In this document: positions 12,001-35,994 of the stretch, piece by piece | Numbering within the stretch: the first letter of the stretch is position 1 | Layout of the letters: every line of letters starts with the position of its first letter | Assembly: GCF_964204645.1 (NCBI RefSeq) | Contig: NC_134033.1 | Coordinates: forward strand, 13,524,655-13,588,654 | Reading direction: 5' to 3' | Origin: Tubulanus polymorphus | Taxonomy: Eukaryota > Animalia > Nemertea | Length of the DNA: 64,000 nt | Program-made: the position numbers and the translations under genes | The notes under the pieces: generated by a model | Databases searched by the model: none | Seen by the model: the letters and a program-made list of their open reading frames with translations, nothing else | Told to the model about the DNA's origin: nothing

Positions 12001-15000
12001 GAGCTGACAGTCGAGGATGTAGTCGACGAATCCGTTGGTGATGTCGTATCGGTACTCGCCGAGGTCGATGTGTCTACCGTAGTGGAGCTGACAGTCGAGG
12101 ATGAAGTCGACGAATCCGTTGGTGTTGTCGTCTCGGTGCTCACCGATGTCGATGTGTCTACCGTAGTTGATGTGACAGTCGAGGACGAAGTAGACGAATC
12201 CGTTGGTGATGTCGTCTCGGTGCTCACCGAGGTCGATGTGTCTACCGTAGTGGAGGTATCAATCGAGGACGAAGTAGACGAATCCGTTGGTGTTGTCGTC
12301 TCGGTGCTCACCGTGGTCGATGTGTCTATCGTAGTTGATGTGTCAGTCGAGGATGAAGAAGACGAATCCGTTGGTGATGTCGTATCGGTGCTCGCCGATG
12401 TTGATGTGTCCACCGTAGTGGAGGTGTCAGTCGAGGACGAAGTAGACGAATCCGTTGGTGACGTCGTCTCTGTGCTCGCCGATGTTGATGTGTCCACCGT
12501 GGTGGAGGTGTCAGTCGAGGACGAAGTAAACGAATCCGTTGGTGATGTCGTATCGGTACTCGCCGAGGTCGATGTGTCTACCGTAGTTGAACTGACAGTC
12601 GAGGATGTAGTCGACGAATCCGTTGGTGATGTCGTATCGGTACTTCCCGAGGTCAATGTGTCTACCGTAGTGGAGCTGACAGTCGAGGATGAAGTCGACG
12701 AATCCGTTGGTGTTGTCGTCTCGGTGCTCACCGATGTCGATGTGTCTACCGTAGTTGATGTGACAGTCGCGGACGAAGTAGACGAATCCGTTGGTGATGT
12801 CGTCTCGGTGCTCGCCGATGTTGATGTGTCCACCGTGGTGGAGGTGTCAGTCGAGGACGAAGTAAACGAATCCGTTGGTGATGTCGTCTCGGTGCTCGCC
12901 GATGTTGATGTGTCCACCGTAGTTGAGCTGACAGTCGAGGACGAAGTAGACAAATCCGTTGGTGATGTCGTCTCGGTGCTCGCCGATGTCGATGTGTCTA
13001 CCGTAGTGGAGCTGACAGTCGAGGATGAAGTCGACGAATCCGTTGGTGTTGTCGACTCGGTGCTCACCGAGGTCGATGTGTCTACCGTAGTTGATGTGTC
13101 AGTCGAGGATGAAGTAGACGAATCCGTTGGTGATGTCGTCTCGGTGCTCGCCGATGTCGATGTGTCTATCGTAGTGGAGCTGACAGTCGAGGATGAAGTA
13201 GACGAATCCGTTGGTGATGTCGTCTCGCTGCTCGCCAATGTCGATGTGTCTACCGTAGTGGAGCTGACAGTCGAGGATGTAGTCGACGAATCTGTTTGTG
13301 TTGTCGTCTTGGTGCTCACCGAGGTCCATGTGTCTACCGTAGGTGATGTGTCAGTCGAGGATGAAGTAGACGAATCCGTTGCCGATGTCGTCTCGGTGCT
13401 CGCCGAGGTCGATGTGTCTACCGTAGTGGATGTGTCAGTCGTCGAGGACGAAGTCGACGAAACCGTTGGTGATGTCGTCTCGGTGCTCGACGAGGTAGAT
13501 GTATCTACCGTAGTTGAGCTGACAGTCGAAGGAGAAGTAGAAGAATCCGTTGGTGATGTCGTATCGGTGCTCGACGATATCGATGTGTCTACCGTAGTGG
13601 ATGTGTCAGTTGAGGACGGAGTAGACGAATCCATTGGTGATGTCGTCACGGTGCTCGCCGATGTTGATGTGTCCACCGTAGTGAAACTGGCAGTCGAGGA
13701 CGAAGTTGACGAATCAGTTGTTAAGGTCGTATCGGTACTCGCCAAGTTCGATATGTCCACCGTAGTGGATGTGTCAGTCGAGGATGAAGTAGACGAATCC
13801 GTTGGTGATGTCGTCTCGGTGCTCGCCGATGTTGATGTGTCCACCGTAGTGGAGGTGTCAGTCGAGGACGAAGTAGACGAATCCGTTGGTGATATCGTCT
13901 CGGTGCTCGACGAGGTCGATGTGTCTACCGTAGTTGAGCTGACAGTCGAGGACGAAGTTGACAAATCCGTTGTTGAGGTCGTATCGGTACTCACCGAGGT
14001 CGATGTGTCTACCGTAGTGGAGCTGACAGTCGAGGATGAAGTAGACGAATCCGTTGGTGATGTCGTATCGGTACTCGCCGAGGTCGATGTGTCTACCGTA
14101 GTGGAGCTGACAGTCGAGGATGAAGTAGACGAATCCGTTGTTGATGTCGTATCGGTACTCGCCGAGGACGATGTGTCTACCGCAGTGGAGCTGACAGTCG
14201 GGGACGAAGTAGACGAATCCGTTGCTGATGTCGTCTCGATGCTCGACGATGTAGATGTGTCTACCGTAGTAGAGGTGTCAGTCGTGGACGAAGTAAACGA
14301 ATCCGTTGGTGATGTCGTATCGGTGCTCGCCGAGGTCGATGTGTCTACCGTAGTGGAGGTGTCAGTCGAAGATGAAGTCGACGAATCCGTTGGTGATGTC
14401 GTCTCGGTGCTCACCGATGTCGATGTGTCTACCGTAGTTGATGTGACAGTCGAGGACGAAGTAGACGAATCCGTTGGTGTTGTCGTCTCGGTGCTCACCG
14501 AGGTCGATGTGTCTACCGTAGTGGATGTGTCAGTCGAGGATGAAGTAGACGAATCCGTTGGGGATGTCGTATCGGTACTCGCCGAGGTCGATGTGTCTAC
14601 CGTAGTGGAGCTGACAGTCGAGGATGTAGTCGACGAATCCGTTGGTGATGTCGTATCGGTACTCGCCGAGGTCGATGTGTCTACCGTAGTGGAGCTGACA
14701 GTCGAGGATGAAGTCGACGAATCCGTTGGTGTTGTCGTCTCGGTGCTCACCGATGTCGATGTGTCTACCGTAGTTGATGTGACAGTCGAGGACGAAGTAG
14801 ACGAATCCGTTGGTGATGTCGTCTCGGTGCTCACCGAGGTCGATGTGTCTACCGTAGTGGAGGTATCAATCGAGGACGAAGTAGACGAATCCGTTGGTGT
14901 TGTCGTCTCGGTGCTCGCCGATGTTGATGTGTCCACCGTAGTGGAGGTGTCAGTCGAGGATGAAGTAGACGAATCCGTTGGTGATGTCGTCTCTGTGCTC

Positions 15001-18000
15001 GCCGATGTTGATGTGTCCACCGTGGTGGAGGTGTCAGTCGAGGACGAAGTAAACGAATCCGTTGGTGATGTCGTATCGTTACTCGCCGAGGTCGATGTGT
15101 CTACCGTAGTTGAACTGACAGTCGAGGATGTAGTCGACGAATCCGTTGGTGATGTCGTATCGGTACTTCCCGAGGTCGATGTGTCTACCGTAGTGGAGCT
15201 GACAGTCGAGGATGAAGTCGACGAATCCGTTGGTGTTGTCGTCTCGGTGCTCACCGATGTCGATGTGTCTACCGTAGTTGATGTGACAGTCGCGGACGAA
15301 GTAGACGAATCCGTTGGTGATGTCGTCTCGGTGCTCGCCGATGTTGATGTGTCCACCGTGGTGGAGGTGTCAGTCGAGGACGAAGTAAACGAATCCGTTG
15401 GTGATGTCGTCTCGGTGCTCGCCGATGTTGATGTGTCCACCGTAGTTGAGCTGACAGTCGAGGACGAAGTAGACAAATCCGTTGGTGATGTCGTCTCGGT
15501 GCTCGCCGATGTCGATGTGTCTACCGTAGTGGAGCTGACAGTCGAGGATGAAGTCGACGAATCCGTTGGTGTTGTCGACTCGGTGCTCACCGAGGTCGAT
15601 GTGTCTACCGTAGTTGATGTGTCAGTCGAGGATGAAGTAGACGAATCCGTTGGTGATGTCGTCTCGGTGCTCGCCGATGTCGATGTGTCTATCGTAGTGG
15701 AGCTGACAGTCGAGGATGTAGTCGACGAATCCGTTTGTGTTGTCGTCTTGGTGCTCACCGAGGTCCATGTGTCTACCGTAGGTGATGTGTCAGTCGAGGA
15801 TGAAGTAGACGAATCCGTTGCCGATGTCGTCTCGGTGCTCGCCGAGGTCGATGTGTCTACCGTAGTGGATGTGTCAGTCGTCGAGGACGAAGTCGACGAA
15901 ACCGTTGGTGATGTCGTCTCGGTGCTCGACGAGGTAGATGTATCTACCGTAGTTGAGCTGACAGTCGAAGGAGAAGTAGATGAAATGGTTGGTGATGTCG
16001 TTTCGGTGCTCGCCGTGGTAGATGTGTCTATCGTAGTTGAGCTGACATTCGAAGGAGAAGTAGACGAATCCGTTGGTGATGTCGTATCGGTGCTCGACGA
16101 TATCGATGTGTCTACCGTAGTGGATGTGTCAGTTGAGGACGAAGTAGACGAATCCATTGGTGATGTCGTCACGGTGCTCGCCGATGTTGATGTGTCCACC
16201 GTAGTGAAACTGGCAGTCGAGGACGAAGTTGACGAATCAGTTGTTAAGGTCGTATCGGTACTCGCCAAGTTCGATATGTCCACCGTAGTGGATGTGTCAG
16301 TCGAGGATGAAGTAGACGAATCTTTTGTGTAGGTCGTATCGGTGCTCGCCGATGTCGACGTTGTCACCGAAGTGGGGCTGGTAGTCGAGGAAGACGACGA
16401 CGAATCCGTTGGTGAGATTGCCTCGGTACTCGCCGCAGTGGATGAATCAACTGTAGTGGAACTGAGAGTCGAGGATGACGTAGACGAATCCGTTGGTGAG
16501 GTCACCTCGGTAGTCGCCGATGTGGAAGTATCAACTGTAGTGGAACTGAGAGTCGAGGATGACGTAGATGAATCCGTTGGTGAGGTCACCTTGGTAGTCA
16601 CCGATGTGGAAGTATCAACTGTACTAGAGCTCAGAGTCGAGGACGACGAAGACGAATCCGTTGGTGATGTCGTCACGGTGCTCGCCGATGTTGATGTGTC
16701 CACCGTAGTGGAACTGACAGTCGAGGACGAAGTAGACGAATCCGTGGTCAAGGTCGTATCGGTGCTCGCCGATGTCGATGTCGTCATCGAAGAGGGGCTG
16801 GTAGTCGAGGACGATGTAGACGAATCTATTGGTGATGTCGTCACGGTGCTCGCCGAGGTCGATGTGTCTACCGTAGTGGATGTGTCAGTCGAGGACGAAG
16901 TAGACGATTCCGTTGGTGATGTCGTATCTGTGCTCACCGAGGTCGATGTGTCTACCGTAGTAGAGCTGACATTCGTGGATGAAATAGACGAATCCGTTGC
17001 CGATGTCGTCTCGGTGCTCGCCGAGGTCGATGTGTCTACCGTAGTGGATGTGTCAGTCGTCGAGGACGAAGTCGACGAAACCGTTGGTGATGTCGTCTCG
17101 GTGCTCGACGAGGTAGATGTATCTACCGTAGTTGAGCTGACAGTCGAAGGAGAAGTAGAAGAATCCGTTGGTGATGTCGTCACGGTGCTCACCGTGGTCG
17201 ATGTGTCTATCGTAGTTGATGTGTCAGTCGAGGATGAAGTAGACGAGCTGACAGTCGAAGGAGAAGTAGATGAAATGGTTGGTGATGTCGTTTCGGTGCT
17301 CGCCGTGGTAGATGTGTCTATCGTGGTTGATGTGTCAGTTGAGGACGAAGTAGACGAATCCGTTAGTGATGTCGACTCGTTGCTCGACGAGGTAGATGTG
17401 TCTACCGTTGTTGAGCTGACAGTCGAGGATGGAATAGGGGAATCCGTTGGTGATGTCGTCTCGGTGCTCGCCGAGGTCGATGTGTCTACCGTAGAGCTGA
17501 CAGACGAGAATGAAATAGACGAATCTGTTGCTGATGTCGACTCGGTGCTAGCCGATGTCGATGTGTCTATCGTGGTTGATGTGTTAGTTGAGGACGAAGT
17601 AGACGAATCCGTTAGTGATGTCGACTCGGTGCTCGACGAGGTCGATGTGTCTACCGTAGTTGATTTGTCAGTTGAGGATGAAGTAGACGAATCCGTTGGT
17701 GATGTCGTCTCGGTGCTCGCCGATGTCGATGTGTCTACCGTAGAGGCGCTGACAGTCGAGGATGAAGTAGACGAATCCGTTGGTGATGTCGACTCGGTGC
17801 TCGACGAGGTAGATGTGTCTACCGTTGTTGAGCTGACAGTCGAGGACGAAATAGACGAATCCGTTGGTGATATCGTCTCGGTGCTCGCCGATGTTGATGT
17901 GTCACTCGTAGTGGACGTTTCAGTCGAGGACGAAATAGACGAAACAGTTGTTGAGGTCGTATCTGTGCTCACCGGGGTCGATGTGTCTACCGTAGTAGAG

Positions 18001-20190
18001 CTGACAGTCGTGGATGAAATAGACGAATCCGTTGCCGATGTCGTCTCGGTGCTCGCCGAGGTCGATGTGTCTACCGTAGTGGATGTGTCAGTCGTCGAGG
18101 ACGAAGTCGACGAAACCGTTGGTGATGTCGTCTCGGTGCTCGACGAGGTAGATGTATCTACCGTAGTTGAGCTGACAGTCGAAGGAGAAGTAGATGAAAT
18201 GGTTGGTGATGTCGTTTCGGTGCTCGTCGTGGTAGATGTATCTACCGTAGTTGAGCTGACATTCGAAGGAGAAGTAGAAGAATCCGTTGGTGATGTCGTA
18301 TCGGTGCTCGACGATATCGATGTGTCTACCGTAGTGGATGTGTCAGTTGAGGACGAAGTAGACGAATCCATTGGTGATGTCGTCACGGTGCTCGCCGATG
18401 TTGATGTGTCCACCGTAGTGGTACTGGCAGTCGAGGACGAAGTTGACGAATCAGTTGTTAAGGTCGTATCGGTGCTCGCCGATGTCGATGTCGTCATCGA
18501 AGAGGGGCTGGTAGTCGAGGACGATGTAGACGAATCTATTGGTGATGTCGTCACGGTGCTCGCCGAGGTCGATGTGTCTACCGTAGTGGATGTGTCAGTC
18601 GAGGACGAAGTAGACGATTCCGTTGGTGATGTCGTCTCTGTGCTCGCCGACGTCGATGTGTCTACCGTAGAGCTGACAGTCGAGGATGAAATAGACGAAT
18701 CCGTTGGTGATGTCGCCTCGGTGCTCACCGTGGTAGATGTTTTTATCGTAGTTGAGCTGACAGTCGAAGGAGAAATAGACGAAACCGTTGGTGATGTCGT
18801 CAGGGTGCTCGCCAATGTTGATGTGTCCATCGTAGCTGATGTGTCAGTCGACGATGAAGTAGACGAATCTTTTGTGTAGGTCGTATCGGTGCTCGCCGAT
18901 ATCGATGTGGTCACCGAAGTGGGGCTGGTAGTCGAGGAAGACGACGACGAATCCGTTGGTGATGTCGTCTCGGTGCTTTCCGAGGTCGATGTGTCTACCG
19001 TTGTGGATGTGTCAGTTGAGGTCGAAGTAGACGAATCCGCTGTTAAGGTCGTATCGGTGCTCGCCAATGTCGATGTGGTCACCGACGTGGGACTGGTAGT
19101 CGAGGATGATGTTGACGAATACGTTGGTGATGTCGACGAGGTGCTCGACGAGGTCGATGTGTCTACCGTTGTTGAGCTGACAGTCGTGGATGAAATAGAC
19201 GAATCCGTTGCCGATGTCGTCTCGGTGCTCGCCGAGGTCAAAGTGTCTATCGTAGTGGATGTGTCAGTTGAGGACGAAGTAGTCGAATCCGTTGGTGATG
19301 TCGTCACGGTGCTCGCCGATGTTGATGTGTCCACCGTAGTGGAACTGGCAGTCGAGGACGAAGTTGACGAATCAGTTGTTAAGGTCGTATCGGTACTCGC
19401 CAAGGTCGATATGTCCACCGTAGTGGAGGTGTCAGTCGAGGACGAAGTAGACGAATCCGTTGTTGAGGTCGTCTCTGTGCTCGCCGACGTCGATGTGTCT
19501 ACCGTAGAGCTGACAGTCGAGGACGAAATAGACGAATCCGTTGGTGATGTTGTCTCGGTGCTCACCGTGGTAGATGTTTCTATCGTAGTTGAGCTGACAG
19601 TCGATGGAGAAGTAGACGAATCCGTTGGTGATGTCGTCACGGTGCTCGCCAATGTTGATGTGTCCATCGTAGCTGATGTGTCAGTCGAGGATGAAGTAGA
19701 CGAATCTTTTGTGTAGGTCGTATCGGTGCTCGCCGATGTCGACGTGGTCACCGAAGTGGGGCTGGTAGTCGAGGAAGACGACGACGAATCCGTTGGTGAG
19801 ATTGCCTCGCTACTCGCCGCAGTGGATGAATCAACTGTAGTGGAACTGAGAGTCGAGGATGACGTAGACAAATCCGTTGGTGAGGTCACCTCGGTAGTCG
19901 CCGATGTGGAAGTATCAACTGTAGTGGAACTGAGAGTCGAGGATGACGTAGACGAATCCGTTGGTGATGTCACCTCGGTACTAGCCGAAGTGGAAGTATC
20001 AACTGAAGTGGAGCTGAGAATCGAGGATGATGTAGACGAATCCGTTGATGTAATCTCCTTTGTACTCGCCGAGGTTGATATGTCTGTAGAGCTGACAGTT
20101 GAGGGTGACGAATCCGTTTTTGAAGTCGTCTCGGAGTTCACCGAAGTTGATGATTTTACCGTTGAGGAGCTGACAGATGTGGATATATCA
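1..20190. repeat. Coding tandem array, 84-bp unit (variants of 81 and 87 bp), ~240 copies, with higher-order block duplications
   Basis: Unit ~gtggagctgacagtcgaggatgaagtagacgaatccgttggtgatgtcgtctcggtgctcgccgaggtcgatgtgtctaccgta recurs at 84-bp spacing (e.g. 1, 85, 169). Indels seen are multiples of 3. Confidence 0.97.
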
Positions 20191-21357: not shown

Positions 21358-24300
21358 TTATTCGTGCGTTTTTGTCATAACCGCGTTTAGGGCTGGAGCT
21401 TGACAAACAAACTGAACGTATCGTGAACCATCATCTCTGTCATCATTAAATCCCCAACCGTTAACATCTTTATTCAACAGTATGTATTTCTCTTTGCCGT
21501 CGTAATTATTCGGCTCTCCAGGACTCCATACCGAGTATTGGTCGGGAATGACTGAAATGAGATTAGTTGATTTATTGGTCGCGTTGTAAAAAAAAACCGG
21601 TTGAACGATCACCTTTTAATTACTACCCAATCGGTAGTATTTCAACGTATTGTCCGTGAATTATCATATTGAATGTCAGTGTAAAATCCGACACGATCGA
21701 AATTCAAAAGTTTCTATCTATAGAACAAAATCTTCCGGGTAACGATATCAAAATCAAGTATATATAGATTATTTACAATGAGTGCGAAATCGATCTTTCG
21801 CACGATGTCAAAATGTCATAGCGTACAAACATATTTGTATAAATGCCCATGACCTGGTTCCCTGAAGGGAGAGACGATGGATGTTTAAGTTGTAATTCAA
21901 TCCTCGTCGGCAAAATAAAATTCAATATGTTTCCCTTTCAGAACAGTTCAAGAAGCAAAAGCTCTCTCTCAGAATACATCTCGTACATCTTGATATACAA
22001 AAGGCTGACAGGCGTGTGCAGATCTACTAATACACTTACCTGTGAATTTTGCATAATCATCCGACCAGACCCATTTACCATCGATCGGAATACCGCCGGT
22101 CCACCATTCACTGCCCACAAATTGCTGTCTGTTTAAGACAGTAGTTATGACTTCCATTTCTCTTTCGTTGTTTATAGAAACTAAATGTCCTCCAAGAACC
22201 ATACAATTTTTCTGTGCGTCCAACCATTCCGTTCGGCTTCTTTTCAGGCAATAACACGAGTCTTTGTAATTTAACGATGCATCGCAGCTCATTGGGCAGA
22301 CTATAAAACATTCAGATTCACAAGAGATCATAGTCAGTAAGATTTATCTTTATAATGAATAATGACGTGTGAGCAAAACAAGTGATGAATCGTAAAAGAA
22401 AAAACACCGTGAAGCTTTCTCATGTGTTGCCCCCAGTCTCTAAAGTCTAACGTACAAGACGACATAGGCAAACACGGAAACAGGAGACAAAACATGGTTT
22501 TGGGGAAACAATGTTTCCGAGATTGTTCGTTTCTGTGTTTCGCTGCGTCGTGTGCGTTGAGCTTAACTAAATGTAGATATCTTTATCAAGTTCTAAAAAT
22601 TCACCTTAGTGACATTTGATTACATTGTGCTCCGATTGGATGATGGAAAATAGTAGAATAACCAAACTCAAACGAGGAGAACAAACAGTATATAGTAAGA
22701 TAAAACCCAAAGTTTTTAAATCAAGAATCTATTCAATTCAATATTGAATAGATTCTAAAGTTTTAAACATATATTGTGGATTTTTGCTTATCAGATTATA
22801 GATGATTTAGCTATGAAATGAACAATCGATCATTTGAAGATTGCATATTCTGCTGCGAAGAATAAGTTAGATCTTATTTTACCTGCTTTTCTGGTACCGT
22901 TGATCATCTGTGCAACTTTTTGGAACTCACAAACTGATGGCAACCGTCGCGTTCTACGGCTGTAATCCCACCACCATTCACGACCGCTTTTCTTCAGGAT
23001 CAAATAATCGGACTTCAGTCCAGACGCCGATTTTTCGCTTCCTTTCCACTTTGAGAATGGTGCTGGTTCTATAAAATCAAAATCGTATTATGGTCAACTA
23101 AGCTCGTACTACACAAATAAATCGAGTTAACCTTTAAAGTACTATTTGTCTTAACTGATTGGTCGGAAATGACAGTCTAAGAATCCATTCCTTTTCCTAG
23201 AGTCCACGGAATGACAAAGTGCAAAATTATAGCAGCTAGTTCAAATAAAAGATGCGTTACTGCGTAATCAGCTATGTGACTCACCCGGTATAGTTGTATC
23301 CCATATGAACGTGTCTCCACCAACACCGCCTTCTCTTTCTCCTCCTGTCCACCATTCCTCGTAACGAGAACTTCTTGACTTGCGTTTATTCAGTTCCCTT
23401 TCAAGAAAATCGTTTTCGGATTTGGAATTTATGGCGACTAAATGTGAAAATTTTCTCCGGCACTCGGATTTTGCTCTCTCGTGTGACCGGCCGTCTGATC
23501 GTGACGAGAAGAAATAACAGCTGTTCTTGTGTCGTATCCAAACGGAACTGCCGCAATTTTCTAAAACAAAAGCAAGTTTACCAAGAAATTGAATGCGTCC
23601 TGTGACTAGTTCCTTGGGGCTGAAATACAAATTGTTGATCGTATAACAATAGATTTGAGCTAGTGAATTGGATTGTGGAACGGCAACCACTCGGGCAATA
23701 TCATTGTCACGAATACGTTTGGCATCATAATATTTTCTAAATCAAAAATTCAGCTTAGGGGAACTGAATAGCCTCATTCTGGAGTTTGAGACCGTTCATA
23801 ACAAATAAATATAAGATAATGTGCCACGCAACGTGCTTGGTAGAAATCTAGGGGATCGAATCACGAATCGATTCCACGTCATCTGCTTACCCGCCTGTTC
23901 AATTTCCTTTTCGCACATGTATCTCAGTTGATAATTTGGCTTGGTATAAATATCATTCCATCCCCAAAAACCGCTACTGTATTTCATACTGATAGCTATC
24001 TCATCGTAGTGATTTGGTTCTCCACTTCTCCAGTTTTCGTATGTCAACGGAGTGTGCGTTACCATTGGCACGCCTTGATTGCTGTTACCGTGAGCGGCCT
24101 CCGCATCCCAGCCCCACTTCAGACCAAATCTTTCACCACCTTTTAAACAAATTATTCTTAGAGTATTAAACAATATGCGATGTGTAATCTGATATATCAA
24201 TACACTTATGAATGATCCGAGGCATTTTTTTTACTTATTTTGAAAATTACAAAATCCTATTTTGTCTCAATCATGAATAACATATAGCTCACCAGTCCAA

Positions 24301-24500
24301 AATTGTGTCCGACCCCAACGACTGACTTTTGTGTCTAAATATCGAGTCAAAAATGAAAAAACAGGTTTCGTCTCAATTGTAGCTAGTTTGGCATCCAATC
24401 TACCACACGCCCTCACCGCGCTACGTCTAGTCACTCGGCTTCTTGAAACGTAGTAACACTGTCTACCAAAGCGAATGAAATTGCTTTTACATGGTCGGGC
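21358..24500 (-). other. C-terminal C-type lectin domain triplet (CTLD4-6)
   Basis: Motifs C..CY, HLVAINS/HLVSINN, WWTGG/FWTGG, WRSGEPNH...WGWND...YMCE, WSPGEPNN...WGFND...FVCQ. Confidence 0.9.
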
Positions 24501-27500
24501 TGGAAAAAAGGGAAATAATAACAATTATCTATTGATTCATTCAATCTATGGGTATATTATAAAACTACCTCTCTGGCTAACCATGGACTACAAAACAAAT
24601 ACTAGTTTTAGTTAGAGTCCACGAGCTAACTAACCTAATTTGACGGGTTCACTTTTCACACCAATACCAGCACCAGTCATTGCCGCTATCGTTATATTAT
24701 ATTCCTTATCCGGCTCTATATCGGTGAACGCGTGTTGCAAGGTATCTCGTGATGTTCTCGTTGTTTTATCGACGCCTTCCGAAGACAGGTGTATCTTTAA
24801 AACAAATGACAACTTCGTCAAAAAACTGAACCTTCATTTAAGAGAACCGGTTATACTGAAACTAATTCATGTTTTAGTAAAATTCGAGCTATTTTATATA
24901 TATTTTATACCTGGTAACCGGTAATTATTCCGTTAGCTGAATCAGCAGGGGGTGGTCTCCACGATAGTATCATAGTCGTCCGGGTCATCATCCTCAGTTT
25001 GATATTCTGCGGAGGCTTCGACGGTACTGAATTAAACATATATTTTGAATTGTCCGTGTGCGAATTTCAACTTACAAATTCCATCGTGAAAAAATTGCTC
25101 AAGAAAGTAGGGTTTTTTCTAATCAAGAAGAAAGAGAGATCTTAAGAACATGCGTGATAGCTAACCGTCTTCTAAAGTGGTCGCGACGTGTCCATTGCTG
25201 ATCGTGCCTTTAACTGTTTTGAAATATGGCTGCACCCTGAAGTTATACCTAGTATTCTTTTCTAGCGAGTTTACGACGTATTTGAGTTCCTTGTTTTCAG
25301 CGGGATTTAGCTGAACTTGAATGGATAATTCCTCTTCACCGGCGGACGCTGGAATCTTTTTGTACAGCACGTTAAAACCTTCGATGAATTGTTTAGATTT
25401 AACCACCTGAAAAATGGTTTACGCAGTAGTATAATAATATAATGATCATAATGATATTTCATTATTCATCTCATTTTTAACGATAAACATCATTATGAAT
25501 ACACCATACATAAATAATGTGTTAAAAAGGGGAAAGGACAATGGGCAAGCCTATACTCGAGGCAAGGCCCATTGCCCTAAGATGGCGAAGGTGACATTTA
25601 CGATATCATCTATCAGACCTCGAGTCATCTATCAAACCATCTATCAGGTCTTGAACAATGTAAGCCTTCGGGGTTCGAACCCACTACCTGGCTTCCCAGA
25701 GTAGAACGACCTGACCACTCATCCACATCGCTTGTTCGAAAGCTCTTAACTGTATATGATAACATGAATAATAGAGTAGTAGTAACGAGGAAAATAATGA
25801 TGATGAATAATATACATGAACGATAATGAAACCACGAAGAAATAGCCTGCGGAAATATGGTTCGCGCCATACGTACCGTCCATTCTAACCCTACACTAGT
25901 CGAACTCAAGACGCGAGGAGCCTTTAACGTAACCACGCGACCGCTAAGTTTCTCTTTCAGTTGATCGATGGAGTACGGATCGACGGTGGTTGTTACTTCT
26001 TCTGGAACACCTATTCAAAAGCAACAACGAATCATTACATCAGATGGCAGTTGCGACAATAATATACACCTTCTTTTATTCATCGTTCATTTTATTCATT
26101 TCCTTTCGGCAATTATCTGTACAATTATCAAATATCGACAATTTGCTTCGTTCAACATCCCAGGATATTACCATGACTCCCCTGCTTACCTTTGACGAGT
26201 AAATTTACAAGTTTACGTTGCGTGGACATAGTATTCAGTGAGCACATATAACTTCCTTGGTCGTCCTTCTTGACATTCGAAATTCTGAGATTCCATTCAC
26301 CAGATCCAGACGCGTGCTGAATGCTCATTCTCTGGTCATCTATGATCATGATTTCATTGAGAGATATTATGCGAAGACCCTCCTTTTTCAGCCACATAAT
26401 CTATAATGAATTAGGATCATAGATGCGTACGTATTCTCTTATAGCATTTCAAATAAAATCGCTATGAAGATCCGATCCCTAATGCTTACTGCATGCTGTC
26501 CTTTATTTTTCACTTCGCAGGGTAAATTCACTGTCTCGCCGACAAATCCTACCACATCTTCTGGCTGCGTGTCCAACGTAGGCTCTTTATCTTCCACAAC
26601 TGGTACAATCGGAACAACAGTTTCCCCTGAAATAAGCCACGATCGGTTTAGAGAAGAGCCGATACTTTCACCAACTCACTCGTGTTCGCGTCATTTTGAA
26701 GCGCTAAGGCGTAAATATAAGGGACCTATTTCATTTCATCCCCCCACTATTAATAAATTCGGAACCCTTTTAGAGAAATAAAAAGAAAAAATCCCTAATA
26801 AATTTGGTTTTATTCATACGTTAAAAAAGGCAAGCCCCTTCTTTTTTCTTAGGTAGACATTTAACGCCAGTACCACTGAACCAGTAGCGCCAAAAGGCAA
26901 AATGTCAAATTTATAGTGTAATTCATAGCTATGTCTGTATATGTATGCTTATGTAATTTGTTCATTCTACACATCTATGTATTCACAAATATTGTAAACT
27001 TTTTGTGTGCTGAGTAAACGTCTTTTTGCAGATCAAATAAATAAACTAAACTAAACTAAAATTAATCACGCGAAGTTGTTATTAACCAATTCAATATCTG
27101 ATACGGGATGTCTATATGAAATGTATGAATATGTGAAAATATATTTACCAGTTTCCTCTTCTGTTTCGTCCACACAAGCCGGTATATCGCATTCTTCTCG
27201 TTTGCCGTTGCTACCGGTAAAACACCATGGTTTCTTCAGCGCACTACCGCTCGGTGCGCGGCAATAATTCTGCGCCTCTTTTACTGACGGATCCGGAAAC
27301 AGTTCCGGACGGTTCATCACGTGGTTCTGCGCTGAATCCCATCGCAAGCACGTTTTGCCAGATTTCGTGACGCTAACCTTACCGATGTAGGCAGCCCCGG
27401 GTGTGACGCACTTCGATGTAACAAACTGTTTATCTTGAATAAGAATATAACGACGTCAAAATACATCAAGTCTCTGATTACATCTAATCGCTTGTGTTTG

Positions 27501-30500
27501 TATATATTTTCTTTTCGTAGCCACTTTCAAAACATATCCATTCCCAAGAAACTTTTTTGAAAATGGCTTGAGCCGAAACGTCAAAACCCTCTTTTAGTTA
27601 ACATGTTAATTTTCATGATAGAAAAAGTGAATTAATCGTTAGATGGTGTTATATGTACATATATGTAGTTCGATCTTTGATGCATTAATCAAAATATTCA
27701 ATCTTATTTATCAATCTTAACAAGCATTTCTCGGTCGGTTTAGACAACCAATATTGAGTCTGGCACGACTCAATATTTGTATAGGCTAAACTATAATGTC
27801 ATCATCATTATGTTATTTATGCGAAAATACTTTCGTATCAAATCAGATGAAATAAATTGGAACAGACGCGCTATATTAACTCATCAATTTTAGTGACGTT
27901 ACCTTCGCATAGCGGGATGTAACAATATGCGCGCCCGCCTCCATCTTTCTGATAACACCACGGTCCCCGTTCGCTATTATCCGGGTTTCGACAGAAGTTG
28001 GAGATTTCGCTGATGCTGGTTACGTTATCCGGAAAAAGATGCAGTCTGTTGGGTTTATTGTACGGCGAAAGAGCGGAATCCCAACGTCGACATTTATTCC
28101 CCTGGCGCGTCCTACTCAACTTGCCGAGATACCCATCACCAGCTCTATTTGTCTTACACGCCTTGTTATATTCGATCGGTTCTGAAATTTGTAGCGAGCG
28201 AAATGATTCTGATGTAGATGGAGGCATGATTGATGAAATCGAGGCTTATAGTGAATATCATTTACCGTAAGGTCGAGCTCCTTTCTCGCAAATATAACCG
28301 AGCCTCAAAGTGGATGATGTGGGCACATCGTTCCAGTGCCAATGACCTTCGCTATTTTTGGCAATTGCGAGAAGATTTTCTTTTCCATCCCAATTGTTCG
28401 GCTCACCGTTACCCCACGCCAGAAACTGGTTCGGTGTTCCTGTCATAAAGATGACACTGGATTTGTGATTAATTCTGTTTTTGGCATTCGGGTATCGTCC
28501 CTGTACAATATTAAATCGACGTCAAATTCAGCTTCATTAGAAAATTACCTAAGAACTTCTTGTGATCTCGACTCCAGACCCACTGGGAATCGACCATGAT
28601 TCCACCAGTCCAAATTTCATCGTCGAAATGTAACTCTTTCATTAGTGTCGCAAAATGTTCCAACTCGGCTTCGTTATCGATGGCTATAAGATGACCGCCG
28701 TCGTTGTTGCAGATCTTTGCGGCCTTCTGACGATCAACTTTCTCAAATGCCAAATCGTAACAAGCGTTACTGACAAATATGTAATTTGCAGGACATTCTG
28801 AAAATGAAATGCTTAGATATATTCTTGTTAAGCGCCAGTACCAGAGAACGGCAGAACCTCAATAATATTTCAACTTGATGAGACTATCCGTGTATGATGA
28901 ATAACGATAGAAGTCCCACACTTATTGCGATTTCTCTCGTTATTTCAACTTGTCTAATCTTTCATGCCATCTTACTGAAGAATTTGTTGTGCTGAACAGG
29001 AATTTCGCAGATATAATGCAATTTTGTAGAGCGTCTCGTCGCCTTCATCCACCATTCGCCTTTATCTTTAATCATCGACATGTACCAGCCGTCATTTCCT
29101 CGTGAGCTTCTTCCCCACATTTTCAGATACGGTTTTTGAACTGAAAAACAAAAACAGCATGGTACTTCATGAATTCGAATCCATCCAACGTCATCATCCG
29201 TCTATTCAGATTCATTGCAAGACGAAGTGTATGCCATAGCCAACATTCATTCGAGTAGAAGTTTTTTTTTTACATTCAACTAATATTTTTAAACAAGTAA
29301 TTAAAAAGGGGCTGCAAGTAAGAGAATGAACCATTTCTTTTTACATACGCGGAATTGTTATATCCCATACGAATTTTCCACCCATATTTTCACCACCGAT
29401 CCACCATTCTCTGTTGTTTTTCTCCGATTTTATTGTACTGATTATAAATTCGTTTTCTTTTCGGCTGTTTATCGCCACGAGATGGCTGCCTTTACTCCTG
29501 CAGTCGGCCTTGGCGGCCGGTTGCGACATCTCACCCTCAGCTTGGACTAGATAGCAGCTTTCTCCGTAATGTGACCAACCCTTCTCGCAGGCTGGAATGT
29601 CAAGAATTTACTTTATTTGCATGTAAAATCTTTTGAATATTTTATACGACAGACAACGCATAATTGTGGTATGATTTTTAGATGGGTTTTGAATATTTTA
29701 CTTTCGGCTGCAGATAAACTCAGCGATGGTGAGGTTAACTATAAGGGAATGATCAGTTGGAAATACAGTCGTCGAAATAATCACTGGAATCTAGAAATTA
29801 CAGCGCCAACCATCTGACCGAACCCTGACCGCGGTTGTGTACTTTATTCCTTTAGTTTGCACAACGTTTCGATGTTTTGACAGCTTTTATGCTTTTTTTA
29901 TCGTTATTATGCCTATTCCTAATGGACGTCTATAATTAAGTACGATCAGTATAATTTAGCATTCTTGTTATCCCAATTAATGTTTATTTGGGTTTCGAAA
30001 ATTACTAATAATGGCACGATGATTATTGGCCGGCAATCAGGACTCACTCGTGACTAGTTGAGGTGATTAACTCCCATAATTAAAGACCCTTGTAACATTA
30101 TATTGACATTCCATTTTTTATCTAACCTATCGGAAAAAATGTGTTTCTGTTTTAGATGTCATATGATAAATGTCTGTGTGATGAATTGATGAAATCCTTC
30201 TTTCGAAATCACGCATAATCGGTCGATCTTTTTTCAAGTTCACCATGGCCTCTAAAGCGAAGAGTCCATGGTTTCACTTACCATCAGTTTTAGCCTTTTC
30301 ACAAATGTAGGGGTACTTGAATTCTGTGACGCGATCTCGCCAGCCCCAGGAAAAGGTATCTTTAGCTAGTGTCATGCCCACTGTACCGGAAATACCACCC
30401 TGGTTGGGTTCATCGTTGAACCAATACTCAAATGTTACTGGTATAAAATCAGAGGTTTCCGTTTTTCGTATGATATCGCTTTCATGCGCCTGAAAAAAAT

Positions 30501-31897
30501 ACAGCATAAATGAAGCGCGGTCAACTAATCTCATTCCGTTTATAAATGACGTATATATAATACTGGTCTATTGGATTCTAAAGAATTTTGAGAATAAATC
30601 ATGTTAAAAATATGTTAAATCAAATCATATGATATATTAATTATTTCATCTATCTTTGGTAAGTTTGTTGTATCTATTTTTGAGGATGAAAGTAAGTAGA
30701 GCGATGCTGGGACATTTTGTAGACAAAAATGTGTCTTCTTTTTTTGAAAGTCAACCAATCGTCGATGTGAAAATTATCTATTTACGTCAGATTCGATTTC
30801 CTTGCCGTCTACTTTTAGTGTCTGGTGGTCCCATTTCCACCTGATACCCGTCCGATGTCCTCCCGTCCAAAACCCTATGACTGACACTTTTTGTTGATTG
30901 AAAAGAGACTCCAAGAATTTCCATTCCGCTTCTGTGTCGATGTTAACCAGTCCGGCATCCATACGGCGGCACTCGCTGGTGGCGCTTTGTTTATTGACTC
31001 TATCAGTTTCTACACGGTAGCATTTTGATTGATAATGAGCCCAATCGATACCTGGACATCGTTCTGTAAATTTATATAGAGAAATTTCAAATTAAATCCT
31101 CGAATGGGTGGATCTAGGGACAGACTTTGACAGGAGCACAGGGTCGATTAGTCATATACATCGATTATATACTGAAAAAGGGCAAAGTATCCATGCAGCC
31201 AAAACAAGGGTCTGGAAAATGTTAGAATTCCAGTGCATTTTCATTCATTTCCAGACACTTTACGAGAATAGGAGCTTGCTATTGCGCTGTGGACTGCTGT
31301 CTTACTTATTAGTTGCGGGTGGAAAAAGTGCCGTGAGAAATTCTGTCATTGTATTTTCAAAAGGGCACGGGAAATTTGCGACGGAAGCGCGTGCTCCTTG
31401 TGCCCCCGTCCGGATCCGCCCCTGATATTTCGATTTTACACACAGATTTCATTGCAAAGCGAACAATGTCGGGCTGTGGTCGAGAATAATTTCCATAAAT
31501 TTCATTCGATTTTTCAAAAGTTGCCATAATTTGACTTATTAAATTGATGATTAATTTTCGTCTCATATTTTAGATTAATGAAATTCAAAATGTTACTTAC
31601 GATCTTCCGGTATATCGTCGCGTTTTATTCTTAAGGCTCCTGTAAAGGCAACATGTTATTTATATACAAAAACTTATCTACACGGACATAATTTCTATGC
31701 AAAGAATCGTTGATGCATCTTCATAAAAAATATGTATAGATGTAATAGTTCGAAAGCATAAGTTACGTATGATTGCAGTTCCTTCTTTAAGAGGTTACAC
31801 TTTCGGCTGAGGCTTCGTTTCAAATCTTACCGAAAACAGCCTGGATGATTGCTAAGAAAGCAACTGCTCGAACGACTCGTCCCAGATACGAGTTCAT
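21358..31897 (-). CDS. Secreted mosaic protein: signal peptide - CTLD x3 - kringle x2 - Ig - FN3 x2 - CTLD x3 (~22 exons, ~1,450 aa)
   Basis: Exon 1 (31897-31831) MNSYLGRVVRAVAFLAIIQAVFG. Exon 2 (31639-31601) ALRIKRDDIPED. Then GT-AG exons for CTLD1 31063-30281, CTLD2 ~29592-28976, CTLD3 ~28797-28266, kringle 1 ~28181-27903, kringle 2 ~27434-27149, Ig ~26626-26190, FN3 pair ~26009-24635, CTLD4 ~24500-23891, CTLD5 ~23560-22883, CTLD6 ~22301-21358 ending ...VCQAPALNAVMTKTHE*. Frames join across the splice sites. No transmembrane segment. AATAAA (minus) at 21269-21274. Confidence 0.88.
24635..26009 (-). other. Two fibronectin type III domains, Robo-like
   Basis: LKAPRVLSSTSVGLEWTV..FIEGFNVLYK..LEKNTRYNFRVQPYF..TTLEDVPSKPPQNI..LSWRPPPADSANGIITGYQI..YNITIAAMTGAGIGVKSEP. 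Confidence 0.85.
25490..25737 (-). mobile_element. tRNA-derived SINE, intronic and degenerate
   Basis: Minus strand GTGGATGAGTGGTCAGG (A box) and GGGTTCGAACCC (B box, ~25671-25682) at tRNA-like spacing, followed by a non-tRNA body and an AT-rich tail. Confidence 0.6.
26190..26626 (-). other. Immunoglobulin (I/V-set, Dpr/lachesin-like) domain
   Basis: VGETVNLPCEVKNKGQHA|IMWLKK...DQRMSI..SGEWNLRISNVKKDDQGSYMCSLNT, containing the canonical C, W and DxGxYxC. Confidence 0.88.
26900..27060 (+). mobile_element. Possible 3' end remnant of a non-LTR retroelement
   Basis: AATAAA followed by a (TAAAC)n microsatellite tail at ~27036-27060. No coding remnant. Confidence 0.35.
27149..28181 (-). other. 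Two kringle domains
   Basis: C..GDGYLGKLSRTRQGNKCRRWD..NFCRNPDNSERGPWCY..YCYIPLC and C..GAAYIGKVSVTKSGKTCLRWD..NYCRAP..PWCF..ECDIPAC. Six Cys each. Confidence 0.93.
27553..27586 (+). ncRNA. Minimal type I hammerhead ribozyme-like motif (U3-A8 variant), Penelope-like
   Basis: tttt-TTGAAAA-t-GGC-ttga-GCC-GAAA-CGTC-aaaa: stem I tttt/aaaa, stem II GGC/GCC, palindromic ACGT helix III, GUC site. Confidence 0.5.
28266..31063 (-). other. N-terminal C-type lectin domain triplet (CTLD1-3)
   Basis: CPGIDWAHYQSKCY..FWTGG..WFNDEPNQ..WGWRD..YICE; CEKGWSHYGESCY..HLVAINS..WWIGG..YICE; CPANYIFVSNACY..IWTGG..WGNGEPNN..WHWND..YICE. Confidence 0.9.
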
Positions 31898-32860: not shown

Positions 32861-33478
32861 TATATTCATTACTTGTCAATTGGATTCAGGCGAGATTCAA
32901 TTTTATCACAAAGTCTACGAAATTAACGACGTTATAAAGGCATAAAAAAAACATCTATCAGTATCTGTTATTATGTCAATCTAATATTTCTGTTAACAAA
33001 TAGATAAAATACTTTAACAATTTAAAACAAACATAATCAGCAACATTAGATTCATCTCATCATTGCCATAAATTTTCTCGTAATTGATTCACAACATATT
33101 CATTTTGGGTAATATTCATAATGACAATTGTACAATTCATTAATCTTTATCCTCTTCTAATTACAATCATTGCAATGGCAAGGGATACAGGCTGTACAGC
33201 TACATATAAAAGAACATTATACATGTATTCAGTAACATCAACAATGAGCTTTAAGTATCATAAGAGAATGGATTCATAGATGTACTTTCGACCTAAAGGC
33301 CCTCATATTTATACTGGTTCATGATAAAAAGCAGGTTCCATGATCAGTAATGTTTCTTTTTTCAGATTATCATCGAGAGAGTTCTGTCAAATACGACGAC
33401 GCAGTACATTATTTCCATTGGTTTTATCTACAGAACCTAGTATTTCCCTGAGTTCCTACACTGCACATGGTCGTCAAT

Positions 33479-35994
33479 TCATTTCTTCTTTTTCTAACAT
33501 AAATAAAAACCAGAGAAAAGTTTTCATCAAGTACGTGAGGATGGATATGTTCTCTTTACTACGACAAACTCCCAAAATATGACCACCTAAATTGCAAACC
33601 CTAAATGAGCTAGAGATGAAGGTATGAGCAAATACACATTATCTAACCAGACTTACTTTGCCTTTTCCTTTTTTCCCTTTTTTCTTCTTAACCCCGGAGC
33701 CACTTTTGTTGATGTCGGTGAACAGATCTTCTGTCATACGATGAGTTACTCGAATTCCAATAGATTTCAGTTTAGCTACAACATCAGTAACATCGCATCA
33801 TTCAATAATTCAGTGGCCAGGGGGCTGGGGTAGAATTATGCAAGCCCTGCATTAGACTGGATAGTTACCTTCCTTTCTAGTTTTGATACCTTCTAATATT
33901 TCTCGGCCACCAAGATTCCCAATCAAATTCTTATCAAGATCGATTTCTTGTAAGCAATCGGAGAACGTAATCCACCTGCGAGAAAAAGATTTAATCAACC
34001 ACAAAAACTTAAAAATCTAAAACTTTCACAAAACAGCTGGTCGTATAACTTACTGCCTAAACAGTCTCATCGCGATAACAGGAGCAAAGGCTACTTCACC
34101 ATAACTATCAATTCCATTATCAGCAATATGTAGTTTATGCAACCAGGGCCCAACGAGAGGAGGGATAACTTCCTTCTTTTTTTTCTTGCTTTTTCCTAGA
34201 AATATTTTCCACAAATCAACGTACGAAGTCTAAAACGTCTTTTTATCTAATAAGCGAAAAGATGTACCTTTTTTCTTGCCTTTTTTACCCTTTCCTTTCT
34301 TGCCTTTTTTAGAACTCGACTTGTTACTTACATCCGATTTTTCCGAACCTATCCTTGTTGTACCCAACGTCGGATTCAATCTCGCTTCTTTCTCTGAGTG
34401 AACAAAAAGACTAATTGATTAAACCTTAAGTATCATAAATACACCAAATCTCCTACGAACACGTTAAAGAAATGTTTTAAAAGAAAAATAAATATTTCCA
34501 GAGGTTAGTAGGCCTACCTGCTTCAAGCAGTTTTTGTTCTTCTTCCAGTTTGCGATTTTCATCTTCAATTTTTTGGTAATAATCTTGCTCCGCTCGTTCG
34601 GCCAGTACTTTGATTAATTCGATGGTTCCTTCGCAGCGAAGATTGTTGCCATCGAGATACAGCTCCCTATAACATAACACTGTCTTTTTGACGAGTTTGT
34701 TTTCATTATGAATAGAAATGAAAACACAGTTGATGCTATGAAATACATTATATCTTACTGTAAAGCTGTGGTTGTGACCATTTTGCCTAACATTTTCCCA
34801 CTCGCCTTTCCCAAATCACAGTAATTCAAGCTCAGGGATAACAATGTTTTATTACCGACCAATCCTTCGCATAATCCTTGACAGCCTTCATCACTGAACC
34901 TAGAAGTAATGATAACGGATAATTTACCTACAGAGCTTTGGATTTTTTGATACTGTAGATTCCTCCGTTTCTGATTTATAGGATTCTAAAGCCTAGCACC
35001 TTTTTGATTAAGATTGTACTAATCTTTCAAACATTGTAGGTCTAATGTACTTACTCATTATAATCGAGACAGAGTGTAGTGAGCGTGTGGCAGTAATTAA
35101 ATGTCCTGAAATTATTTTTAAAAAACCCACAAATATCATCTATATCATTAGAGTTCATTGTATAGTAAAAGTACAAATTCAAGAAACGGAGAGTTCATGT
35201 ATCTACCTTGCTAGCCGAGTAGCACCGTAAGGTTGTATGAGGCAGTCAATTAATTCGACAACACGAACTTGATAGAATCCCTTTTCCAACATGAGAGACT
35301 GTAAAAGATAAAAGTAAACATACAGCGTGAAGAGCTACAGTACTAGAATTTTAATTAAGACTATAGGCCAAGTAGTTAAAACAAAATATAGGCCCTACCT
35401 TAATTATCTCCTACTAGATCTTAATCTATGAATTATTTTTCAAACAATTTGAATACTTCAATAAAAGACATTTTCTATAAAATAGTAGTAATTGGTTCAG
35501 AGAATGGATCAACTTACCAAAGTTGCTATATTTGAATGTTCCAGAAACAAATCCCAGACATATATATCCTTTATGTACGTATAACGTTCAGATCTGACCG
35601 CGGCAATCAACGGTTCCAACTTTACTTGAAGATCATCCTTCGTTTCCACGGGAACTGGTTCAATTACCAACTATAGTAAAAACAGGAATACACCACACAT
35701 TAATCCATTAATCTTTTGACTTTCCTTTTTTGTACCGGTACTTTTAAATTAATGATTCAATTAAAAATGAAGGTTTAGGCCTACACTTACTTTGACTAAA
35801 AGTTGGTTCTTTTCGATGCAGGCTTTCATCAGTTTTTTTACTCCCATGCAAAGTAAAGTATTGGTATTACGACAATTCATCTCATATGTTTTCATCAAAC
35901 GCTTTACTAAAATATCTGGGTTTTGCAACATTCCTTTCATCTTCTTCTTCTTTCCTCCTTTCTTTTTCCCTTTCTTTCCTTTCTTAGGCGCCAT
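33479..35994 (-). CDS. Leucine-rich repeat protein (RNI-like LRRs) with Lys/Gly-rich tracts; ~11 coding exons
   Basis: MAPKKGKKGKKKGGKKKK...; LTTLCLDYNE|FSDEGCQGLCEGLVGNKTLLSLSLNYCDLGKASG; LQELYLDGNNLRCEG; LHKLHIADNGID; LQEIDLDKNLIGNLGGREILEGI. Last micro-exon 33493-33479 encodes KKKK*. GT-AG junctions keep frame. AATAAA (minus) at ~32553-32558. Confidence 0.85.

Follow-up and report, generated by a model that had tools for sequence, protein, structure and literature searches.

Several C-type lectin-like domains (CTLDs) carried in tandem on one chain, of which only some hold a sugar site, are found in the mannose receptor family (MRC1, MRC2/Endo180, PLA2R1 and LY75/DEC-205), and the same is true of the nemertean protein described here. 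In such domains, the EPN motif is typical of calcium-dependent binding of the mannose/N-acetylglucosamine (GlcNAc)/fucose type, and the C2-C3 disulfide normally braces the sugar-binding loop. Kringles may meet CTLDs in more than one way: the CTLD of tetranectin binds plasminogen kringle 4 in a calcium-sensitive manner (PMC13466976), and the RpMR "mannose receptor" genes of a clam list both CLECT and KR among their domains (PMC12321717). Here we describe LOC141910893, a gene on the minus strand of a 64,000-nucleotide stretch of the Tubulanus polymorphus genome (contig NC_134033.1, positions 13,524,655 to 13,588,654; the window, in whose numbering coordinates are given unless prefixed by a chromosome handle). 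Its product is predicted to be a multi-CTLD mosaic lectin whose module order was found nowhere else, namely a signal peptide, a linker, three CTLDs, two kringles, one immunoglobulin (Ig) domain, two fibronectin type III (FN3) domains, and three further CTLDs. The reading that we favour, with a probability of about 0.6, is that of one secreted, two-headed mosaic C-type lectin of ~163 kDa that would bridge glycans.

Gene structure and transcripts of LOC141910893

The 1452-aa product of isoform X1, XP_074657863.1 (P0151), was mapped letter for letter and at 100% identity onto 22 coding exons of the minus strand (21358..31897; 4359 nt with the stop codon), starting with the ATG at 31897 and ending with the TAA at 21360-21358, and all the introns were GT-AG. 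These are exactly the ends given in a preliminary description made from the DNA sequence. A tblastn search of the same protein against the chromosome piece of the window (C9:13524655-13588654) also returned 100% identity in the cleanly aligned exons, and the exon-sized open frames of the minus strand from 31897 to 21358, taken singly, matched Pfam Lectin_C, Kringle, Ig families and fn3, in that order. The 1245-aa isoform X2 (P0005), its kringle in the expected place, was retrieved when the kringle-1 exon served as query in an exhaustive HMMER search. Our own splice-site scoring left several junctions undecided and overlooked exon 2, and was replaced by the exact mapping. The gene is present in RefSeq already, though unnamed and undescribed, as an "uncharacterized protein"; it had been anticipated that an automated pipeline would split it or label it macrophage mannose receptor-like, and RefSeq did neither.

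RNA assemblies and genomic runs were compared over 23200-29190, a stretch in which all the junctions that link one domain family to another are found. Two RNA assemblies, X3 from a 2024 study and X5 from a 2014 study, each provided a single contig (3091 and 4405 nt, respectively) with 13 introns removed at the modelled positions in that stretch. The skipped gaps had CT..AC ends on the plus strand, which correspond to GT..AG for LOC141910893, and the loose ends of the contigs at 29140 and 23285 resumed at 29349 and 23068, the ends of the neighbouring exons. Since single contigs join exons 5 to 20 as modelled, introns 5-19 were all removed in one molecule, and none of the exon joints was found over the same stretch in the genomic run X1. 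Compared with the 4359 nt of coding sequence, the 4405-nt X5 contig had offsets that accommodate exons 20-22 and some 55 nt past the stop on one side, and that come to a few bases from the ATG on the other, where they do not decide the inclusion of exon 2. LOC141910893 is a real, transcribed gene, with one gene giving one mRNA; the outcome that was to refute the preliminary description, cDNA from two genes, did not arise in these contigs.

The RefSeq isoform X2 ignores the donor of exon 19 at 23285 and reads into the intron (23271-23285), so that its product would end within CTLD5, with half of that domain and the whole of CTLD6 missing. This read-through was not seen in the RNA contigs X3 and X5, which carried the spliced form only. 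In a separate observation on the same stretch, dozens of sites and a few small indels set the genomic runs X1 and X2 apart from the reference, several of these falling in exons, which points to high heterozygosity or to variation between individuals.

Each kringle is encoded by one exon and every other module by two, and a phase-1 intron lies at every module boundary, a pattern classic of extracellular modules that have been shuffled. On the minus strand, exon 1 (31831..31897), assigned by exact mapping and hydrophobicity and outside the stretch examined in RNA, provides the ATG and the putative signal peptide (aa 1-22), and exon 2 (31601..31639; 39 nt, RefSeq model only) a 13-aa linker (aa 23-35) with a dibasic R-I-K-R at aa 26-29. 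CTLD1 is divided between exon 3 (30786..31063, aa 36-128; mapping and Pfam) and exon 4 (30282..30489, aa 129-197), the latter with EPN at 155, WRD at 178 and an insert of ~30 aa in the long loop. CTLD2 is formed by exon 5 (29349..29591, aa 198-278), at which the RNA contigs go on from 29140, and exon 6 (28976..29140, aa 279-333), with an RNA joint at 28976/28797. CTLD3 follows in exon 7 (28549..28797, aa 334-416) and exon 8 (28266..28439, aa 417-474; EPN 429, WND 452), both seen by mapping, Pfam and RNA, as are exons 11, 13, 15, 17 and 18 below.

The central modules begin with kringle 1 (exon 9, 27903..28181, aa 475-567; Pfam Kringle 58.7 bits) and kringle 2 (exon 10, 27149..27433, aa 568-662; 61.9 bits), each with six cysteines, phase 1-1 borders and RNA support. 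The Ig domain occupies exon 11 (26490..26626, aa 663-708) and exon 12 (26190..26400, aa 709-778; I-set 46.5 bits for the whole domain), the first FN3 exon 13 (25877..26010, aa 779-823) and exon 14 (25166..25406, aa 824-903; fn3 30.5 bits, whole domain), and the second FN3 exon 15 (24911..25026, aa 904-942) and exon 16 (24635..24794, aa 943-995; fn3 59.2 bits, whole domain), with exons 12, 14 and 16 also present in RNA. The second triplet starts with CTLD4 in exon 17 (24293..24499, aa 996-1064) and exon 18 (23891..24139, aa 1065-1147; EPN 1105, WND 1125). CTLD5 comprises exon 19 (23285..23560, aa 1148-1239), whose donor at 23285 is used by the RNA contigs, and exon 20 (22883..23068, aa 1240-1301; WWD 1272), at which they go on. 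CTLD6 ends the chain with exon 21 (22040..22300, aa 1302-1388; mapping and Pfam) and exon 22 (21358..21551, aa 1389-1452; EPN 1401, FND 1423), and its last cysteine is followed by a non-hydrophobic tail of 14 aa. An AATAAA overlaps the stop codon.

When whole-domain slices were taken, all eleven modules scored above the Pfam gathering cut-offs, and the six CTLD slices of P0151 reached 26.3-49.3 bits against a cut-off of 22.6 (PF00059). The eleven modules of four families, in the order CTLD3-Kringle2-Ig-FN3(2)-CTLD3, had been read correctly from the DNA, in which only the 39-nt exon 2 had been overlooked. Hydrophobic 19-residue windows (Kyte-Doolittle) were confined to residues 4-27 of P0151, the highest of them starting at residues 4-9, and, with this sole hydrophobic stretch and a short and polar C-terminus past the last cysteine of CTLD6, there is neither a transmembrane helix nor a glycosylphosphatidylinositol-type tail. 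The trypsin-like, PAN and Gla families (PF00089, PF00024, PF00594) had no Pfam match in the product, the ricin-B and FN2 families (PF00652, PF24562, PF00040) had none in either P0005, which covers aa 1-1241 of the product, or the slices that remained, and Pfam reported no Frizzled CRD, kinase, WSC or CUB domain. In this way, the earlier view of a soluble protein with a signal peptide and with no transmembrane or protease domain was upheld by the hydrophobicity scan and Pfam. The mature chain would have ~163 kDa, a pI of 8.5, 40 cysteines and three N-glycosylation sequons.

Paralogues and origin of the module order

The order CTLD3-Kr2-Ig-FN3(2)-CTLD3 (Kr, kringle) was found in no other species by an exhaustive kringle search of 1.84 billion representatives, word-indexed searches of 5.8 billion proteins, the ESM Atlas or the literature, which agrees with the preliminary description, where the combination was not recognised as a named family. 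When the Kr-Kr-Ig-FN3-FN3 block and the CTLD3-Kr-Kr block were used as queries in word-indexed searches, no protein extended across either junction, and the full protein and block queries for orthologues in other species returned single-family matches only; the word index misses distant relatives, and the searches did not directly reach other nemertean genomes. The ESM Atlas gave only Ig/FN3 or FN3/lectin clusters. Among the best 150 kringle proteins of the 1.84 billion representatives, a CTLD co-occurred in only five besides the LOC141910893 product, all of them with other orders: the paralogue LOC141899442, two amphioxus proteins, one from Styela and one unnamed metagenome protein. Nothing on LOC141910893 was found in the literature on nemertean kringle or lectin mosaics.

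The only full-length relative retrieved by the word-indexed search was a paralogue in the same genome, LOC141899442 (XP_074641851.1, P0152; C2:10616600-10624030, plus strand), with 29% identity. A local domain scan read it as CTLD3-Kr3-CTLD3. Like LOC141910893, it shows a signal peptide, a CTLD triplet of types a-b-c, kringles, a second a-b-c triplet and no anchor, whereas it differs in having three kringles and neither Ig nor FN3. Its middle has far fewer introns, with the three kringles in one 334-aa frame and much of CTLD4-5 in one 358-aa frame. A third locus (C2:3.604-3.606 Mb) encodes a CTLD triplet followed by one kringle. These three loci form a Tubulanus family defined by an a-b-c triplet without C2-C3, followed by kringles.

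A tree of the 12 CTLDs from both paralogues grouped positions 1 with 4, 2 with 5, and 3 with 6, and each domain paired with its counterpart in the other gene, with support of 95/95 for A3+B3 and 98/94 for A6+B6 (A and B denoting the two genes); the grouping was matched by none of 200 label shuffles. This positional grouping indicates that the a-b-c triplet was duplicated around the kringles before LOC141910893 and LOC141899442 split. The Ig-FN3-FN3 cassette, whose nearest matches were adhesion molecules of the sidekick, DSCAM and protogenin type, is present in LOC141910893 and not in LOC141899442, and may have been gained in the former or lost in the latter. LOC141910893 arose by triplet duplication and exon shuffling.

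At least 125 matches to the Pfam kringle model are distributed over many chromosomes of this genome, in many different mosaics, and for an invertebrate this expansion is large. Tandem clusters were observed, for example, at C4:19.66-19.68 Mb, C9:14.378-14.385 Mb and C2:29.975-29.988 Mb, and three kringles share one open frame at C9:16323305-16324054 and at C11:10735993-10736739. LOC141910893 is one product of genome-wide kringle shuffling, and the number of matches makes Tubulanus a good place to study how modules are shuffled.

Predicted binding and rival explanations

By motif reading, the complete set of EPN, a downstream Glu and WND was present in CTLD3, CTLD4 and CTLD6 (as FND in CTLD6), CTLD1 had an imperfect site with EPN and WRD in place of WND, and CTLD2 and CTLD5 had neither EPN nor WND. 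In the paralogue, CTLD1 and CTLD6 retain EPN and WND. The nearest relatives with solved structures were the multi-CTLD receptors DEC-205, PLA2R, FcRY and MRC2, and sugar-binding domains of the CLEC4 type.

We infer from these features that secretion, sugar specificity and a bridging role are the most likely properties of the product. The signal peptide would route it into the secretory pathway, where no membrane anchor would retain it. Each end would present a triplet of the same three CTLD types, a-b-c, the outer two with EPN and the middle one (CTLD2 or CTLD5) without a site, and the sugars proposed are those bound in a calcium-dependent manner, of the mannose/GlcNAc/fucose class. Between the triplets, Kr-Kr-Ig-FN3-FN3 would provide five small beta-rich modules, which probably serve as a spacer and as protein-binding surfaces. 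Multivalent, two-headed binding could then join glycans on two surfaces, either by clumping or coating microbes or by cross-linking glycoproteins such as the mucins of mucus.

Several observations weigh against this proposal. The cysteines of all six CTLDs are C0-C0′ and C1-C4, with non-cysteine residues at C2 and C3, whereas both C2 and C3 are present in the Styela CTLDs of the same alignment; since the disulfide that they would form is lost in six of six domains, canonical sugar binding is not assured. Moreover, CTLD1 has an Arg where WND has Asn. The kringles were compared with plasminogen at the pocket residues Asp55/57, Trp62, Tyr64 and Arg71, in the numbering of plasminogen kringles: kringle 1 keeps Asp55, Trp62, Tyr64 and Arg71 and has Ser for Asp57, while kringle 2 has lost both Asp of the acidic pair, so that the lysine-binding pocket appears degraded in both. 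Because of the missing disulfide and the degraded pockets, the binding activities of CTLDs and kringles alike are uncertain. Hydrophobicity was the one criterion by which the signal peptide was assigned, and the RNA joints examined are those of introns 5-19, downstream of exons 1-4. The assignment of the CTLD fold stands, and the domains that lack C2-C3 would represent an atypical subtype, on which no discussion was found in the literature. Across both paralogues, the C2-C3 cysteines are missing in 12 of 12 CTLDs, and the EPN/WND calcium-site residues are retained in half.

The main rival to a glycan-bridging lectin, which we consider unlikely though worth serious attention, is a scaffold of the extracellular matrix or of cell adhesion that acts by protein-protein contacts of kringles, Ig-FN3-FN3 and CTLDs rather than by binding sugar. 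The loss of the C2-C3 disulfide from every CTLD, the two CTLDs without a calcium/sugar motif and the resemblance of the Ig-FN3-FN3 cassette to sidekick, DSCAM and protogenin fit such a scaffold, as does the ability of CTLDs to bind proteins, kringles included, which tetranectin and plasminogen kringle 4 exemplify (PMC13466976). However, EPN, Glu and WND/FND have been kept in three CTLDs across the duplication, and EPN and WND in two CTLDs of the paralogue, a retention suggestive of selection for the calcium site; moreover, true adhesion molecules have far more Ig and FN3 domains than the one and two found here, and there is no membrane anchor. A role as a lectin-type toxin of mucus or proboscis glands, secreted for defence or predation and acting on the tissues of prey or predators, is less probable still. 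Lectotoxin-, nattectin- and snaclec-like C-type lectins have been reported in nemertean proteotranscriptomes (PMC7460313; PMC9132205), and the LOC141910893 product looks secreted and its gene adjoins predicted giant mucin genes, but the reported candidates are small one-domain lectins and not 163-kDa mosaics, and neither protein nor solved-structure searches revealed similarity to a known toxin.

Two further explanations question the protein model itself. Ig-FN3 and multi-CTLD arrays usually belong to membrane receptors, and it could be supposed that the product is tethered through an unannotated alternative 3′ exon or a partner protein. This is very improbable, given that the stop lies directly after CTLD6 and is overlapped by AATAAA, that the X5 offsets fit an end ~55 nt beyond it, that the 1 kb up to the next gene (the predicted mucin, with its own signal peptide) holds no hydrophobic open frame, and that RefSeq lists no isoform with a transmembrane segment. 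Hardly any weight is left for a gene-prediction artefact that joined neighbouring genes, two or more, into one: RefSeq's model is a predicted one, and the CTLD triplets do look like a duplicated unit, but the X3 and X5 contigs cross the CTLD3-Kr1, Kr1-Kr2, Kr2-Ig, Ig-FN3, FN3-FN3 and FN3-CTLD4 borders, and the introns at these borders are of only 84-522 nt and all of phase 1, too short to house a promoter together with another signal-peptide exon.

A secreted lectin that bridges glycans remains the preferred reading. LOC141910893 provides a clean, transcript-supported case of a new extracellular protein built by duplicating and shuffling phase-1 exon modules. Should a role in mucus or immunity be borne out for this lectin, it would count among the earliest functional footholds in the innate recognition or mucus biology of nemerteans. 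Taken alone, a further mosaic lectin specific to one lineage changes no general view.

Genomic neighbourhood and comparison with known systems

The G+C content of the window is 53%, with strong skew, in bases 1-20000 and 32-44% in the rest, with a sharp shift at ~20.3 kb. A giant serine/threonine-rich open frame lies on the minus strand (3-20360) and runs uninterrupted for more than 6786 codons in the window and on to about C9:13506337. It is made of short repeats, with ~73% Ser+Thr in the neighbouring stretches measured, and reads as a giant mucin gene. Long parts of the opposite strand are free of stops as well, which is usual for repeats of this kind. This frame lies head to tail with LOC141910893, ~1 kb downstream of it, and begins with its own Met and hydrophobic leader near 20306. 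The possibility that LOC141910893 runs on into it was rejected on account of the stop codon and AATAAA, the contig end ~55 nt later, and the separate Met and leader of the mucin.

A decayed copy of the lectin gene was found before a second mucin gene, at C9:13499305-13500477, ~24 kb before the window start. Its nucleotide identity was 70% for exon 22, intron 21 and part of exon 21, 84% for exon 7, and 74-85% for the 3′ flank up to the mucin start, and it is interrupted by frame breaks and lacks, through an internal deletion, the equivalent of 22134-28535 of the window. The position of this copy before a second mucin gene indicates that the lectin-mucin pair was once duplicated as a block. No serine/threonine-rich frames were present in the examined flanks of the paralogous C2 loci, and the adjacency of lectin and mucin therefore seems specific to the LOC141910893 locus. 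By analogy with tetranectin, one might speculate, as a long shot, that CTLDs and kringles of successive LOC141910893 molecules bind each other head to tail and form a calcium-dependent lectin mesh that would cross-link the glycans of the giant membrane mucins encoded immediately downstream, in which case the protein would be a dedicated mucus-gelling factor and the two genes an evolved lectin-mucin pair.

Two other elements were observed in the window. Intron 13 contains, at about 25669-25732, the core (~64-90 nt) of a dispersed repeat, where the depth in the DNA run rises from ~25 to ~1600; a first look gave 191 candidates on many chromosomes, of which 40 were scored, at 80-89% identity. Its translation has a tRNA-T-arm-like stretch, yet ARAGORN calls no tRNA, and the repeat is possibly a short interspersed nuclear element or a miniature inverted-repeat transposable element. 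On the other side of the gene, minus-strand open frames at 33400-34815, with leucine-rich-repeat-like text and long Lys/Gly-rich runs, are probably the next gene upstream of LOC141910893.

When the protein is set against described systems, kringles and CTLDs likewise stand in one extracellular chain in the "apolipoprotein(a)-like" proteins of amphioxus (P0015, P0061) and the "macrophage mannose receptor 1-like" protein of Styela clava (P0159), besides the clam genes mentioned above. The orders of these mosaics differ (Kr4-CTLD-Kr4-CTLD; CTLD-Kr6; Kr-CTLD7 with discoidin, trefoil, LCCL and FN2), none of them has Ig-FN3-FN3 or two mirrored CTLD triplets, and orthology with LOC141910893 does not go beyond the shared domains. 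In the preliminary description, kringles were said to accompany usually serine proteases or ROR, MuSK and Kremen; that none of the corresponding domains occurs here bore out the contrast that it drew, whereas the pairing of kringles with CTLDs proved to have precedents in the amphioxus, Styela and clam proteins. The kringles themselves are ordinary six-cysteine domains with plasminogen K1-K2 as best solved match (E 3e-55), but, compared with plasminogen, HGF, apolipoprotein(a) and prothrombin, the protein has no PAN/apple and no serine-protease domain, and its pocket residues appear replaced partly (kringle 1) or fully (kringle 2). From ROR/MuSK and Kremen it differs by the absence of Frizzled CRD, kinase, WSC, CUB and transmembrane segments, and from Ig-superfamily adhesion molecules of the sidekick, DSCAM and contactin type by its one Ig, two FN3 and polar C-terminus, the similarity to them being limited to 12-14% of the query.

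The mannose receptor family supplies the solved structures that CTLD5 and CTLD6 match best, but LOC141910893 has no ricin-B (CysR) or FN2 domain and no transmembrane helix or endocytic tail, and its six CTLDs are split into two triplets instead of the 8-10 contiguous domains of those receptors. Tetranectin (CLEC3B), in turn, is a small trimeric protein with one CTLD that meets its kringle on a separate protein, whereas LOC141910893 carries both domain types in one chain.

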